NCBI GenBank assembly: GCA_964252035.1
Contig: OZ176206.1
Reading direction: 5' to 3' (one strand)
Length of the DNA: 64,000 nt
Source: Podarcis erhardii
Taxonomy: Eukaryota
The notes beneath the pieces were generated by a model that worked only from the letters and a program-made list of their open reading frames with translations, was not told the DNA's origin and searched no databases. The number at the start of each line of letters is the position of its first letter. Within the stretch, counting starts at the first letter, position 1. The position numbers and the translations under genes were made by a program. Shown piece after piece: positions 43,206-49,350 of the stretch.

Positions 43206-43841
43206 ACTGGCTAGCAAGGGGAGGTTTGGGAGAGTTGCCATGGGATCAAAAGTAAATGTTAAGTAATTAAATTCACGTTCCAACTTATTCCAAGAGCTTA
43301 AGTTGGCATAAATGGTTAATTCTCCCCCCCCCCAATTTATTCTAATAGCCCTTAAGGTGGGTTTGCCTAAGGCAGAGTAGCTGGCTCAATGTCACTGGGT
43401 AGGCTTCAAGGCTAAGTGGGGATATGAACTCGGGTTTCTATCGTGAGATACTGATTCCCCAGTCTGCAGAAGAATTGTGTAAGGTCCCAAGATGGTAATC
43501 CATATTCAGTAAACAGCACCACCCCCAGCAGCCCCTCTCCACAAAAATTCCCAGTTTGCAGGTTATAATTCTACAGTGAAGAACCTCTGAGTGCAGCAAT
43601 GTGTTGCTGTGTGTGTGATTGTGTTTTCCCGACCCCCAAGAGCCAGGATGCAATTCTGCAATTACATGGTTTTGAGGGTGTGTATGGGACCAGGGTCAAC
43701 TGAAGTTGAGTGGATCCTCAAGCTGATAATGTTCAGGAATTCAGTTTAAAATGCTATAGCGTCATTGCTCCTCTCTTACCCTAAATGAGGGCCAGTTCTC
43801 ACACAGCAGTGTTTGTGATGCAATAAGTTGCTTTCCATGAT

Positions 43842-43968
43842 CCCCTTCATGGATCACTGCCTTGCCGTGGCAAAGGGGCTTGAATAACTCAGAGAAGCTA
43901 TGAACTATGCCGAGCAGGGCACCCAAGATGAACAGGTCATAGTGGAGAGTTTTGACCAAACGTGATCC
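43842..43968 (+). ncRNA. Putative HDV-like self-cleaving ribozyme at the BovB 5' end
   Basis: P1 CCCCUUC/AAAGGGG (6 of 7), P2 GGAUCAC/GUGAUCC (7 of 7), P3 GCC/GGC, L3 UUGCCGU, 1-bp P1.1 G43864-C43879, J4/2 C-C-A-A; folded by eye only. Confidence 0.55.
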
Positions 43969-44020
43969 ACCTGGAGGAGGAACCGGCAAGCCACTCCAGT
44001 ATCCCTGCCAAGAAAACTCC

Positions 44021-47000
44021 ATGGACAAAGACAATAGGCATATAAAAGTTATGACGCTGGAAGATGAGCCCCTCAGGTCGGAAGGCGTCCAACATGCTAC
44101 TGGGGAAGAGCGAAGGACAAGTACAAGTAGATCCAGAGCTGATGAAGCGGCTGGGCCAAAGCCGAAAGGACGCTCAGCTGCGGATATGCCTGGAAGTGAA
44201 AGGAAAGTCCAATGCTGTAAAGAAAAATATTGCATAGGAACCTGGAATGTAAGAACCATGAACCGGGGTAAGTTGGATGTGGTCAAAAATGAGATGGCAA
44301 GAATAAATATTGACATCCTGGGCATCAGTGAACTACAATGGACGGGAATGGGCGAATTCAGTTCAGATGACCATCATATCTACTACTGTGGGCAAGAAAC
44401 CCACAAAAGAAATGGAGTGGCCCTCATAGTCAACAAAAGAGTGGCGAAAGCTGTACTGGGATGCAATCCCAAAAATGATAGAATGATCTCGATACGAATC
44501 CAAGGCAGACCTTTTAACATCACAGTAATCCAAGTTTATGCACCAACTACTGGTGCTGAAGAAACTGAAATTGACAAATTCTATGAAGACTTACAAGACC
44601 TTATAGAAGTGACACCAAAGAAGGATATTCTTCTCATTATAGGGGATTGGAATGCTAAAGTAGGGAATCAAGAGATAAAAGGAACAACTGGCAAGTTTGG
44701 CCTTGGAGATCAAAACAAAGCAGGGCAAAGGCTAATAGAGTTCTGTCAAGAGAACAAGCTGGTCATCACAAACACGCTTTTCCAACAACACAAGAGACGA
44801 CTCTACACGTGGACATCACCAGATGGGCAGCATCGTAATCAGATTGATTATATTCTCTGCAGCCAAAGATGGAGAAGCTCTATACAGTCAGCAAAAACAA
44901 GACCTGGAGCTGACTGTGGCTCAGATCATCAGCTTCTTATAGCAAAATTCCAGCTTAAACTGAAGAAAGTAGGAAAAACCACTGGGCCGGTAAGATACAA
45001 TCTGAATCAAATCCCTTATGAATACACAGTGGAAGTGAGGAACAGGTTTAAGGATTTAGATTTGCTGGATAGAGTGCCTGAAGAACTATGGGTGGAGGCT
45101 TGCAACATTATACAGGAGGCAGCAACGAAAACCATCCCAATGAAAAGGAAATGCAAGAAAGCAAAGTGGCTGTCCAACGAGGCCTTACAAATAGCAGGGG
45201 AGAGAAGGCAAGCAAAATGCAAGGGAGATAGTGAAAGATACAGGAAATTGAATGCAGATTCCCAAAAAATAGCAAGGAGAGACAAGAAGGCCTTCTTAAA
45301 CGAGCAATGTAAAGAAATAGAGGAAAACAACAGAATGGGAAGAACCAGAGATCTGTTCAAGAAAATTGGAGATATGAAAGGAACATTTCGCACAAAGATT
45401 ACCATAATAAAGGAAAAAAGTGGTAAGGACCTAACAGAAGCAGAAGACATCAAGAAGAGGTGGCAAGAATACACAGAGGAATTAGACCAGAAAGATATGG
45501 ATGGCTCGTACACCCCAGGTAGTGTGGTTGCTGACCTTGAGCCAGACATCCTGGAGAGTGAAGTCAAATGGGCCTTAGAAAGCACTGCAAATAACAAGGC
45601 CAGTGGAAGTGATGATATTGCAGCTGAACTATTTAAAATTTTAAAAGATGCTGCTGTTAAGGTGCTACACTCAATATGCCAGCAAATTTGGAAAACTCAG
45701 CAGTGGCCAGAGGATTGGAGAAGATCAGTCTACATCCCAATCCCAAAGAAGGGCAGTGCCAAAGAATGCTCCAACTACCGCACAACTGCACTCATTTCAC
45801 ACGCTAGCAAGGTTATGCTTAAAATTCTACAAGGCAGGCTTAAGCAGTATGTGGACCGAGAACTCCCAGAAGTGCTAGCTGGATTTCAAAGGGGCAGAGG
45901 AACCAGAGACCAAATTGCAAACATGCGTTGGATTATGGAGAAAGCTAGAGAGTTCCAGAAAGATATCTACTTCTGCTTCATTGACTATGCAAAATCCTTT
46001 GACTGTGTCGACCACAGCAAACTATGGCAAGTTCTTAAAGAAATGGGAGTGCCTGATCACCTCATCTGTCTCCTGAGAAATCTCTATGTGGGACAAGAAG
46101 CTACAGTTAGAACTGGATATGGAACAACTGATTGGTTCAAAATTGGGAAAGGAGTACAGCAAGGCTGCATACTGTCTCCCTGCTTATTTAACTTATATGC
46201 AGAATTCATCATTCAAAAGGCTGGGCTGGATGAATCCCAAGCGGGAATTAAGATTGCCGGAAGAAATATCAACAACCTCAGATATGCAGATGACACAACC
46301 TTGATGGCAGAAAATGAGGAGGAATTAAAGAACCTTTTAATGAGGGTGAAAGAGGAGACCGCAAAATATGGTCTGAAGCTCAACATCAAAAAAACGAAGA
46401 TCATGGCCACTGGGCCCATCACCTCCTGGCAAATAGAAGGGGAAGAAATGGAGGCAGTGAGAGATTTTACCTTCTTGGGCTCCATGATCACTGCATATGG
46501 TGACAGCAGTCACGAAATTAAAAGACGCCTGCTCCTTGGGAGAAAGGCGATGGCAAACCTAGACAGCGTCTTAAAAAGCAGAGACATCACCTTGCCAACA
46601 AAGGTCCATATAGTTAAAGCCATGGTTTTCCCAGTAGTGATGTATGGAAGTGAGAGCTGGACCATCAAGAAGGCTGTTCGCCGAAGAATTGATGCTTTTG
46701 AATTATGGTGCTGGAGGAGACTCTTGAGAGTCCCATGGACTGCAAGAAGATCAAACGTATCCATTCTTAAGGAAATCAGCCCTGAGTGCTCACTGGAAGG
46801 ACAGATCGTGAAGCTGAGGCTCCAATACTTTGGCCACCTCATGAGAAGAGAAGACTCCCTGGAAAAGACCCTGATGTTGGGAAAGATGGAGGGCACAAGG
46901 AGAAGGGGACGACAGAGGACGAGATGGTTGGACAGTGTTCTCGAAGCTACAAACATGAGTCTGACCAAACTGCGGGAGGCAGTGGAAGACAGGAGTGCCT

Positions 47001-47059
47001 GGTGTGCTCTGGTCCATGGGGTCACGAAGACGAAGAGTCGGACACGACTAAACGACTAA
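44021..47059 (+). CDS. BovB ORF: apurinic-type endonuclease plus reverse transcriptase (first ATG 44021; frame open from TTG at 43952)
   Basis: APE motifs GTWNVRT, LGISE, VYAPT, GDWNAKVG, IDYIL, GSDH; RT motifs FIDYAKSFD, QGCILSP, YADD, LNIKKTK; no stops or frameshifts. Confidence 0.93.
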   Translation: MDKDNRHIKVMTLEDEPLRSEGVQHATGEERRTSTSRSRADEAAGPKPKGRSAADMPGSERKVQCCKEKYCIGTWNVRTMNRGKLDVVKNEMARINIDILGISELQWTGMGEFSSDDHHIYYCGQETHKRNGVALIVNKRVAKAVLGCNPKNDRMISIRIQGRPFNITVIQVYAPTTGAEETEIDKFYEDLQDLIEVTPKKDILLIIGDWNAKVGNQEIKGTTGKFGLGDQNKAGQRLIEFCQENKLVITNTLFQQHKRRLYTWTSPDGQHRNQIDYILCSQRWRSSIQSAKTRPGADCGSDHQLLIAKFQLKLKKVGKTTGPVRYNLNQIPYEYTVEVRNRFKDLDLLDRVPEELWVEACNIIQEAATKTIPMKRKCKKAKWLSNEALQIAGERRQAKCKGDSERYRKLNADSQKIARRDKKAFLNEQCKEIEENNRMGRTRDLFKKIGDMKGTFRTKITIIKEKSGKDLTEAEDIKKRWQEYTEELDQKDMDGSYTPGSVVADLEPDILESEVKWALESTANNKASGSDDIAAELFKILKDAAVKVLHSICQQIWKTQQWPEDWRRSVYIPIPKKGSAKECSNYRTTALISHASKVMLKILQGRLKQYVDRELPEVLAGFQRGRGTRDQIANMRWIMEKAREFQKDIYFCFIDYAKSFDCVDHSKLWQVLKEMGVPDHLICLLRNLYVGQEATVRTGYGTTDWFKIGKGVQQGCILSPCLFNLYAEFIIQKAGLDESQAGIKIAGRNINNLRYADDTTLMAENEEELKNLLMRVKEETAKYGLKLNIKKTKIMATGPITSWQIEGEEMEAVRDFTFLGSMITAYGDSSHEIKRRLLLGRKAMANLDSVLKSRDITLPTKVHIVKAMVFPVVMYGSESWTIKKAVRRRIDAFELWCWRRLLRVPWTARRSNVSILKEISPECSLEGQIVKLRLQYFGHLMRREDSLEKTLMLGKMEGTRRRGRQRTRWLDSVLEATNMSLTKLREAVEDRSAWCALVHGVTKTKSRTRLND

Positions 47060-49350
47060 ACAACAACAAGAAGTTGCTTTATTCGAAAAAGGCTCTTGCA
47101 GATCAGATAAGCCCATCAGTGGGAGCACTGTAGCAACATCTGAAAGGAGGTGCCTGTGTCCCATCAATCCTATTTGGGACTATAATCCAATGTGTCCTTT
47201 TCTGGGTTAGGCTATTTTGCAACCTTTCTCTTTCTCTCAATTGACATGTTAATCAGCTTTGACTCTGATATGACATCTTGAATCTTCAGATTGATGATGA
47301 CAACATTTGCCATTGTTTCTGTGTTCCTAGTTGAGTTTCCACCTCTCCCCCCCCTTTTTTTAAAGTAATGCTTTACCTCGCTCCCTGATTACTTGGTTTC
47401 TTCAGTAGCTAATTGTGAGGAGTTTGTCAAAGGCCCATTGAAAGCCTGAATAAATTACTCCAGCTGGTTCTCCTTTATCCTCTACTTCAACTGGCATTTT
47501 AGCAGCCTGAGATACTGTTTATCCTTTGTGCAAGACTCACAATGGGGACGTTAAGGGGATTTTTCATCTGTGCATGTTCACACAGAAGTGAGTCCCTCTG
47601 AATTCAGTGTGTTTTACTCCCAAATGAGCGTCCATAGGGTTGCAGCCAGACAAATTGAATGTGTGACTTTTTCCTCTCTCCTTTGAGAGAGTGTTATGGC
47701 CTTAATCCAGGTGGGGATGGGCGAAGGCCAAAACACCCCTTTCTCTTCCAAATTCTGCCATGCACTGATCACGAACAAGTAGGACAGCTTTGTTGAAGGC
47801 CTTGTTCAGTTAACCCACTGTTGAGGATTCAAAGATGGAGAGGAAGAAGGAAGAGTTGGGGCAGGTAGAACCTCGTTGATCCTCGTGGGAAGAAGCAGAA
47901 AAGTTTAAATAATGTCGTCTAAGGCTGTGTACTCACTATACCTTTCGAGTACATTCGAAGCACGTTCTTTCCCTCAAAGAATTCTGGGCTCCGTACTTTG
48001 CCTCTGACAGAGTTACTGTTCCCAGCAACCCATTAGAAACTACACTACCCATAATCCTTTGAGGGAACGAAGGTGCTTCAGATGTGCTTTGAAAGGATAG
48101 TCTGTGTGCAGCCATAGCGGAGTCACTGTCTGCTGCCTTTTCCATAGATGCTGAGCCTTTCATGGAATGTGCCCTTCCATTGTTAGCTCTGACAGTTCCA
48201 GACAGATGGGTTTGAATCCTTTTCTTTAAAAAAAAAACCCATCTTAAAGAGCTTCCAGAAAGGTAAGCATGTTTACAACACCAGAGAGCCTCATGGCACA
48301 TTAATACTACTGTTTACTATAGCCTGAGATGCAAAAGGGTTGAACACACTCAAAGAGAGAGAGAGCGTGCAAACGGATGGGGAGGCTAAGGCTGCTTCCC
48401 ACCTCCTTGCCAGAAATATTGGTCCTTGCTCATCAGTGAGCTGCAGTTTTAGTTCGTCTACTGATTTGGAGCTTGCTCTTTCTTTCTTTCTTTCTTTCCA
48501 TTTCAAAGTCTTCCAAAACTTGAAGGAACCAATTGATTAGATATTTCCTTTCCAGCTAGGTTGTGGTGGTCAGAGTACAGTATAATTTGTTACTTGCACA
48601 GTCCTTTTTTCATTGATGGGTAATATGGTGGAGAGAATAAGGCAGGGCACACTGTAATAAAGTGGCCTGACTAATGGTCAGGAATTGGATTTTCTGGAGG
48701 AAAAACCCGAGCAAGTGGTGGTGGGTGAGCTTCAGGTTCAACTTTCTTGTTGCCTCACATGGCTCTGACTTGGAAACTAACAAGGACATTATCCCACAGG
48801 TTAAATTTGCCCCAGAGGTTTCCACTTCCCAATTCCTACTATAATGCACTCATGACACCAAAGATACCTGCTTCCAGCATTTTTTACATACTAACTATGC
48901 CACAGTTATTTCAACAATGTCTAGACACTGAAAACTATCAACATGCCTTATAACCAGGAGAAGATTTGGTGAACTCCACCTTGGTTTGCATAGATTTCTG
49001 AGTACGCCAGGGAAGAAAAGAGTAATGGAGTACCTAGCACATTTTGCATGAATTCCAAAGAAACGTCTGAACCACAATGTCATGTTTTCAGAACCATTCA
49101 TTGAGTTTTCCCAATACTGCAGACTCAAATCATTGAAAGAATTGCTAGGAAATTGGTGGGGGTTATAACCGTGGTTTTGTGTCTGTTAAATGTGGCGTAT
49201 GGAAGCATTATGGCATGGAGTCATTCATTATATGTTGGCTTATTTTGACATCCTGGAAAATTATATCTGATTTTTTTGCCTTATTATAATAAACCTAAAA
49301 GCATGAACTGTCTTATAAACTTGTTTTTCTTAGGGAGGTAAAACATTTTA

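Follow-up and report, generated by a model that had tools for sequence, protein, structure and literature searches.

BovB is the textbook example of a horizontally transferred LINE, occurring in reptiles, ruminants, marsupials and their parasites. Ruminski 2011, cited in PMC5786205 and PMC6765202, established that RTE elements carry HDV-like ribozymes, so that such ribozymes are already known in this clade and BovB would be an additional case. In L1Tc, in vitro cleavage by the ribozyme L1TcRz gives a product that begins with C1, and reverse transcriptase stops at G37 and C38; P1 of this ribozyme contains a triple G-C at its base, P1.1 consists of a single pair, and the same 77 nt act as a promoter whose TSS coincides with the cleavage site (PMC3185411). 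A different class, twister variants, has been described at the 5' ends of some RTE elements, such as Perere-3 of Schistosoma (PMC8501958, PMC7761336), and cleavage by these variants leaves AA at the element 5' end (PMC8501958). No paper linking BovB to a ribozyme was found in the literature searched, and an earlier description in Ruminski et al. (2011) is possible. Here, the comparison of a BovB copy from the window (the whole stretch of 64,000 nucleotides that was analysed) with its relatives suggests that a conserved HDV-type double pseudoknot very probably forms the 5' terminus of BovB.

The copy studied, from a lacertid lizard, is an intact BovB/RTE LINE that occupies 43835-47070 as bounded by its TSD:

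43825-43834, plus strand: 5' TSD, AAGTTGCTTT, with an identical 10-mer at 47071-47080
43835-43841, plus strand: seven junction bases, CCATGAT, outside the family consensus and peculiar to this copy
44021-47059, plus strand: intact BovB ORF encoding AP endonuclease and reverse transcriptase (Pfam Exo_endo_phos, RVT_1)
47071-47080, plus strand: 3' TSD, AAGTTGCTTT, a perfect 10-bp match to 43825-43834

The characters of the BovB/RTE clade are all present, namely a single ORF for AP endonuclease and reverse transcriptase, a short-repeat 3' end, which here reads (ACGACTAA)2 ACAACAACAA, and a TSD. The open frame comprises 1035 aa when counted from a TTG at 43952; its ATGGAC start, with the ATG at 44021, is conserved across RTE families. 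The ORF product is nearest to proteins of Podarcis muralis, at 94-96% identity, and of Zootoca, at 90%.

The first base of the family was located by comparing positions 43640-44240 with two DNA runs, taken as contigs, and with two RNA-seq runs, the latter made from a related lizard. In the two DNA runs, the flanking sequence of other genomic copies ceases to match the window at 43841, 43842 and 43844, and the continuations are unrelated and A/T-rich. In the Zootoca copy (L001) the TSD, ACTGGCTTTCTG, directly adjoins CCCCTTC, in a Varanus copy (L002) the TSD, GTATTATAGC, directly adjoins CTCCTTC, and a second Varanus copy (L137) has the same first base behind a different flank. Because the flanks of the copies diverge there and the Zootoca and Varanus TSDs abut it, the family begins at C43842, where P1 also begins, and not at 43835. 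The original prediction had placed cleavage at 43841/43842, which is this family 5' end, and the clustering of BovB 5' ends at the start of P1 that it called for is seen in the other genomic copies, in Zootoca and in both Varanus copies. Its further statement that the cleavage site lies 7 nt from the element start was misled by a junction artefact of this copy. The seven junction bases are the reverse complement of the internal stretch 43847-52 plus one base, and they may stem from snap-back copying once the reverse transcriptase had reached the end of the RNA. Eickbush and colleagues have described variable 5' junctions in those R2 lineages in which cleavage of the RNA falls exactly on the 5' end (PMC3774820). 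An inhibitory pairing of CCAUGA (43835-40) with UCAUGG (43847-52), which had also been suggested, involves complementary strands, but the extra bases are confined to this copy and the suggestion is not upheld.

The first 128 bases of the element (43842-43969) fit an HDV-type nested double pseudoknot:

43842-43848, plus strand: P1 5' strand CCCCUUC, pairing 7/7 with the consensus GAAGGGG; predicted cleavage 5' of C43842
43850-43857, plus strand: P2 5' strand, UGGAUCAC, pairing with 43962-69
43859-43871, plus strand: P3 GCC/GGC with the 7-nt L3 UUGCCGU, in which G43864 is the proposed P1.1 partner of C43879
43872-43879, plus strand: P1 3' strand AAAGGGG (consensus GAAGGGG), with C43879 (P1.1)
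43881-43955, plus strand: P4 domain, a rod of ~75 nt with basal helix 43883-90/43947-53, predicted independently by RNAalifold
43956-43961, plus strand: J4/2 CCAAAC, C-N-A-A plus two more bases, with C43956 as the candidate catalytic cytosine
43962-43969, plus strand: P2 3' strand, GUGAUCCA, pairing with 43850-57

The strand order of HDV-like ribozymes (P1, P2, P3, P3', P1', P4, P4', P2') is thus present, and the coordinates and pairings initially listed for P1, P2, P3, L3 and C43879 are all there as written. The P2 core (43851-57/43962-68) pairs 7/7 and reaches 8 pairs when U43850-A43969 is added, no base separates P3' from P1', and GACCAAAC stands directly before P2'. In the window copy, P1 has 6/7 pairs, with a C48/A72 mismatch (C43848/A43872). 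Position 43872 is G in 1306234 of 1488196 units of contig depth (about 88%) and in 101 of 101 RNA reads of one RNA direction; with about 88-100% of copies carrying G, the interpretation of this mismatch as CpG decay held up. With G43872, the consensus P1 pairs 7/7, at -11.2 kcal/mol.

Taken singly, the window copy is unremarkable. Its MFE z-score is -1.14, our own HDV-type descriptor in its relaxed form matches ~1 time per 300 nt in the window, and its strict form (P1 7/7, P2 of at least 7 bp) gives roughly one match in 10 kb there. In addition, the Rfam HDV-family and twister models gave no BovB match at E up to 10 (searches of 5 kb and of 151 nt), so that the covariance search proposed at the outset came back empty for the HDV family. 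The z-score, the relaxed match rate and the lack of Rfam matches are what would be expected if the strands of a LINE 5' UTR of the usual kind were complementary by accident and had been singled out afterwards. A copy with the P1 mismatch would indeed not stand out alone; the consensus-quality pattern, however, exceeds chance, because a fold as infrequent as the strict one starts on the exact family 5' end and because P2, P3 and P4 covary between lineages. In three species P1 begins on the TSD-defined family 5' end, and the consensus restores all seven P1 pairs. A helix that competes in the MFE structure of the window copy, 43858-65/43916-23, was not chosen by RNAalifold, is weakened in the consensus and was rejected.

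The covariation was assessed on a comparison set of Zootoca L001, Varanus L002 and L137, L003 from a Paragonimus assembly contig (truncated at its 5' end by the contig end) and L004 from an ENA metagenome contig, whose ORFs are 67-90% identical to the window ORF over the first 300 aa. When the full pseudoknotted model was applied to six BovB 5' ends, 95.6% of cells were paired and 10 pairs showed changes on both sides, distributed as two in P2, one in P3 and seven in P4. The covariation score was 0.248 versus 0.135 for shuffles, none of 500 shuffles reached it, and slid controls remained far lower, at or below 0.09. The compensatory changes in P2 replace A-U by G-C in L004 and C-G by U-A in L003, and that in P3 replaces G-C by A-U in both L003 and L004. 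P1 and P1.1 are conserved and show no compensatory change across the six 5' ends, the sole change in P1 being C-G to U.G in Varanus, where the 5' strand CUCCUUC keeps a U.G pair; L003 has U for A at the equivalent of 43873, and its 5' partner lies beyond the contig end. Of the covariation anticipated for P1, P2 and P3, that in P2 and P3 was therefore found and that in P1 was not.

RNAalifold, which cannot predict pseudoknots, was applied to five BovB 5' UTRs and returned P2, P3 with one extra U.G pair, and the long P4 rod, while columns 1-8 and 32-39, which are exactly the two P1 strands, were left unpaired. Nine G.U cells in the six 5' ends would read A.C on the opposite strand, and the sense RNA is therefore the folded strand. 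The HDV-type nested double pseudoknot predicted for the BovB 5' terminus is supported by this comparative evidence, that is, by covariation in P2, P3 and P4 and by the P1 strands that RNAalifold leaves free. The same covariation and RNAalifold results already largely refute chance complementarity, which we regard as very improbable. The tip of P4 carries an insertion of 18-24 nt in L003 and L004, which forms its own hairpin in L004 and is the kind of peripheral variation known from HDV-like P4 domains. At the apical P4 loop (43919-43920), the window copy is one base short (GGG-CA-CCC, a 2-nt loop); other copies read GGG-YCA-CCC, and some reads insert C there.

Covariation proves structure, not catalysis, and the main rival is that the leader, though structured, has no catalytic activity and follows an internal promoter. 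According to this explanation, transcription would begin at C43842 from the internal promoter, and the conserved fold in the 5' UTR would help to initiate translation, assemble the RNP or protect the 5' end. The residues around the putative active site bear on both possibilities. The single possible P1.1 pair, G43864-C43879, is invariant in 6/6 sequences, with a polarity swapped relative to HDV but the same as in L1TcRz. L3 shows the U...CG. pattern of HDV and CPEB3, as UUG(Y)CGU, in 5/6 sequences; the exception is L004 (ACC-CAGGUGC-GGU), in which the G is kept and L3 begins with C, not U. In J4/2, which reads C43956-N-A-A-A-Y, C43956 (C-N-A-A) is present in 5/6 sequences and lies one base later in L004, AAA at 43958-60 is invariant among the six 5' ends, and 43957 is variable. 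Of the two cytosines put forward as catalytic, C43956 and C43957, the first is thus retained as a conserved candidate and the second is not. The topology, a P1 of 7 bp, a P3 of 3 bp, an L3 of 7 nt, the U..CG of L3 and the C-N-A-A are all HDV-like, which argues against a leader devoid of catalysis. On the other hand, two extra bases precede P2', and the cleavage-site pair is C43842-G43878 in all sequences, the usual G.U wobble being absent; in both respects the core of the fold is not canonical, as a non-catalytic leader would allow.

L1TcRz offers a parallel to this cleavage-site pair. In BovB, as in L1TcRz, C1 is paired to the equivalent of G37, which is followed by C38, the base of P1 is G-C-rich, P1.1 (a candidate in BovB) is a single pair, and the first base of the element lies at the (predicted) cleavage site. 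Since active L1TcRz has C1 and G37, the C-G cleavage-site pair is not disqualifying. L1Tc differs from BovB in belonging to the ingi/L1Tc clade, in its total of 77 nt with a short P4 and in having experimentally established activity. It also bears on the main rival from two sides: a TSS explains uniform 5' ends equally well, as L1Tc illustrates (PMC3185411), whereas promoter and ribozyme are compatible, as they are in L1Tc.

CPEB3 has the L3 pattern UU.(.)CGU and a weak P1.1, and BovB appears similar in both respects. The CPEB3 model (RF00622), however, gives no BovB match, its G1.U wobble is replaced in BovB by C1-G, and CPEB3 is a single-copy intronic mammalian sequence, whereas the BovB fold is a transposon terminus. 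The BovB fold is not a member of the CPEB3 family, and the initial comparison with CPEB3 gives way to a closer relationship with the RTE and L1Tc ribozymes.

The comparison was extended to distant RTE elements (L005, L134, L135, Adineta L132/133 and L136), which are ~61-72% identical to the window ORF where aligned within the first 300 aa. The similarity of their leaders to BovB is limited to a block just before the ATG, in which the following feature lies:

43971-43999, plus strand: hairpin CUGGAG...CUCCAG, directly 3' of the proposed ribozyme fold and common to distant RTE families

RNAalifold on nine loci gave 8 pairs for this hairpin, 4 of them with compensatory changes. The hairpin and the block up to the ATG (43971-44020) are kept in L002-L005, L132 and L134-L136, and the leaders upstream are otherwise unalignable across families. 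The block is also the core matched in over a hundred ruminant Bov-A/Bov-tA SINE copies.

Two of these elements from ENA and JGI metagenome contigs, L005 (63% identity to the window ORF over the first 300 aa) and L135 (61%), have a compact HDV-like ribozyme candidate at the 5' boundary of their RTE family. Their mutual similarity begins at L005 2286 and L135 147, and Rfam RF02682, the HDV ribozyme of F. prausnitzii, matches L005 2287-2364 with 36.9 bits and L135 148-225 with 35.6 bits (E 0.001-0.003, under the gathering score of 44). The match comprises P1 CUCUCAU/AUGAGAG, P3 ACC/GGU, L3 UCUGCGU, a 19-nt P4 and J4/2 GCUAA, and P2 ACAUGCA/UGCAUGU was recovered by RNAalifold with one compensatory change. 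A close BovB relative thus has a recognisable predicted HDV-like ribozyme at the same place, and BovB appears to share its topology with a much larger P4; this correspondence in position weighs against the non-catalytic leader. The BovB fold resembles the RTE ribozymes of L005 and L135 in that it, too, forms the very 5' end of a LINE of the RTE clade and has its parts in the order P1, P2, P3, L3, P1', P4, J4/2, P2'; it also resembles them in its 7-nt L3 ending in CGU, the C-N-A-A of J4/2 and the conserved hairpin before the AUG; in the BovB lineages L003 and L004, P3 is ACC/GGU as in L005. It differs from them in its P4 rod of ~75 nt (versus a 19-nt hairpin), its J1/2 of 1-2 nt (versus 9) and its candidate P1.1 of one G-C pair with swapped polarity (versus two pairs), and the two extra bases between C-N-A-A and P2' set it apart from HDV and CPEB3 as well as from L005 and L135. 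Between the BovB fold and the L005/L135 ribozyme there is no detectable sequence or covariance-model similarity. Similarly, a covariance model built from the BovB alignment (R1) recovered only BovB copies and no distant RTE families. Our own descriptor, with J1/2 of at most 6 nt, misses the sister-family ribozyme, and its negatives on L132 and L136 mean little.

The occurrence of another ribozyme class at RTE 5' ends also has to be weighed, since the BovB terminus could be, for example, a truncated twister variant. A CACUGCC..UGCCG stretch bears a loose resemblance to a twister core and may favour this possibility, and twister variants do sit at some RTE 5' ends, Perere-3 among them (PMC8501958, PMC7761336). 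Against it, twister models searched at E up to 10 gave no match, the element starts with CCCC and not with the AA left by twister-variant cleavage (PMC8501958), and the covarying helices follow one another as in HDV, the partner of the 5'-terminal strand lying directly after P3. We consider a different ribozyme class to have hardly any probability.

The RNA data are to some extent in line with the main rival. In two RNA-seq runs of the related lizard, there was no pile of read starts at 43842, and 54-69 reads crossed 43842 from one specific flank (the library strand convention is not on record), so that junction-crossing reads are not depleted, as would be expected of a non-catalytic leader. 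Most reads of the one direction come from other loci than most reads of the other, and the crossing reads may be antisense or derive from a dead copy; ordinary RNA-seq, moreover, under-samples 5' termini. The RNA-seq data are mild evidence against efficient cleavage at the read-crossing locus and do not amount to a refutation.

With all of these observations considered, self-cleavage of the BovB 5' fold in functional copies is the best explanation, and we hold it to be probable; the non-catalytic leader is unlikely by comparison. In the proposed mechanism, BovB would be transcribed, probably within longer host or read-through transcripts, and 43842-43969 would fold into a P1 of 7 bp, a P2 of 8 bp, a P3 of 3 bp, a 7-nt L3, a one-pair P1.1 and an expanded P4. 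This fold would put C43956 of J4/2 beside the phosphate 5' of C43842, where the RNA would be cut. The released RNA would begin exactly at the first base of the element, would be translated from the AUG 179 nt downstream and would then be copied by target-primed reverse transcription; as the released RNA would start at C43842, new full-length copies would start at C43842 as well. If this is true, BovB would need no promoter of its own, since the self-cleaving 5' end would turn any read-through transcript into a source of exact full-length RNA, as it does in R2, L1Tc and insect RTEs, and thousands more HDV-like ribozyme copies would exist in squamate and probably ruminant genomes, where current Rfam models miss them.

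A more tentative and rather doubtful extension is that the BovB 5' end is a composite module, consisting of a ribozyme with a conserved and unusually large P4 rod and the hairpin common to the RTE relatives, which would both free the RNA and drive cap-independent translation. Such a module would make BovB free of host promoters and could help to explain its repeated horizontal transfer between vertebrate classes, and non-autonomous derivatives, for example a form reduced to the 5' and 3' parts, would retain this module, its action being in cis. In the two RNA runs, 33 and 30 reads leave the window at 44041 and resume with 46985-47014, which indicates a transcribed, internally deleted BovB derivative. 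This derivative keeps the first ~200 bases, including the proposed ribozyme fold, the hairpin and the ATG, and the last ~86 bases.

A metagenome scan with the conserved block returned 120 contigs, nearly all of them ruminant Bov-A/Bov-tA SINEs and from one sample, with no BovB 5' end among them; scans of viral contigs found nothing; and none of six BovB pieces in bacterial genome contigs included a 5' UTR. The short contigs L126-L131, from assemblies of Adlercreutzia agrestimuris, Sinisalibacter lacisalsi, Paraclostridium tenue, Aureimonas endophytica, Neobacillus muris and Parasutterella muris, code for BovB proteins that share 68-95% identity with that of the lizard, and the BovB in these bacterial assemblies is almost certainly eukaryotic contamination.

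A minus-strand ORF of 187 aa (43762-44325) runs across the proposed ribozyme fold. A protein search with this antisense ORF showed that the P1 and P1' strands are kept at the amino-acid level in P0139 and P0141-P0143, in which the compensating positions are codon wobble sites; P0004 is a BovB copy without the 5' UTR. Similar antisense translations occur inside two annotated proteins, P0138 from Podarcis raffonei and P0142 from Varanus, and these two annotations are probably artefacts.
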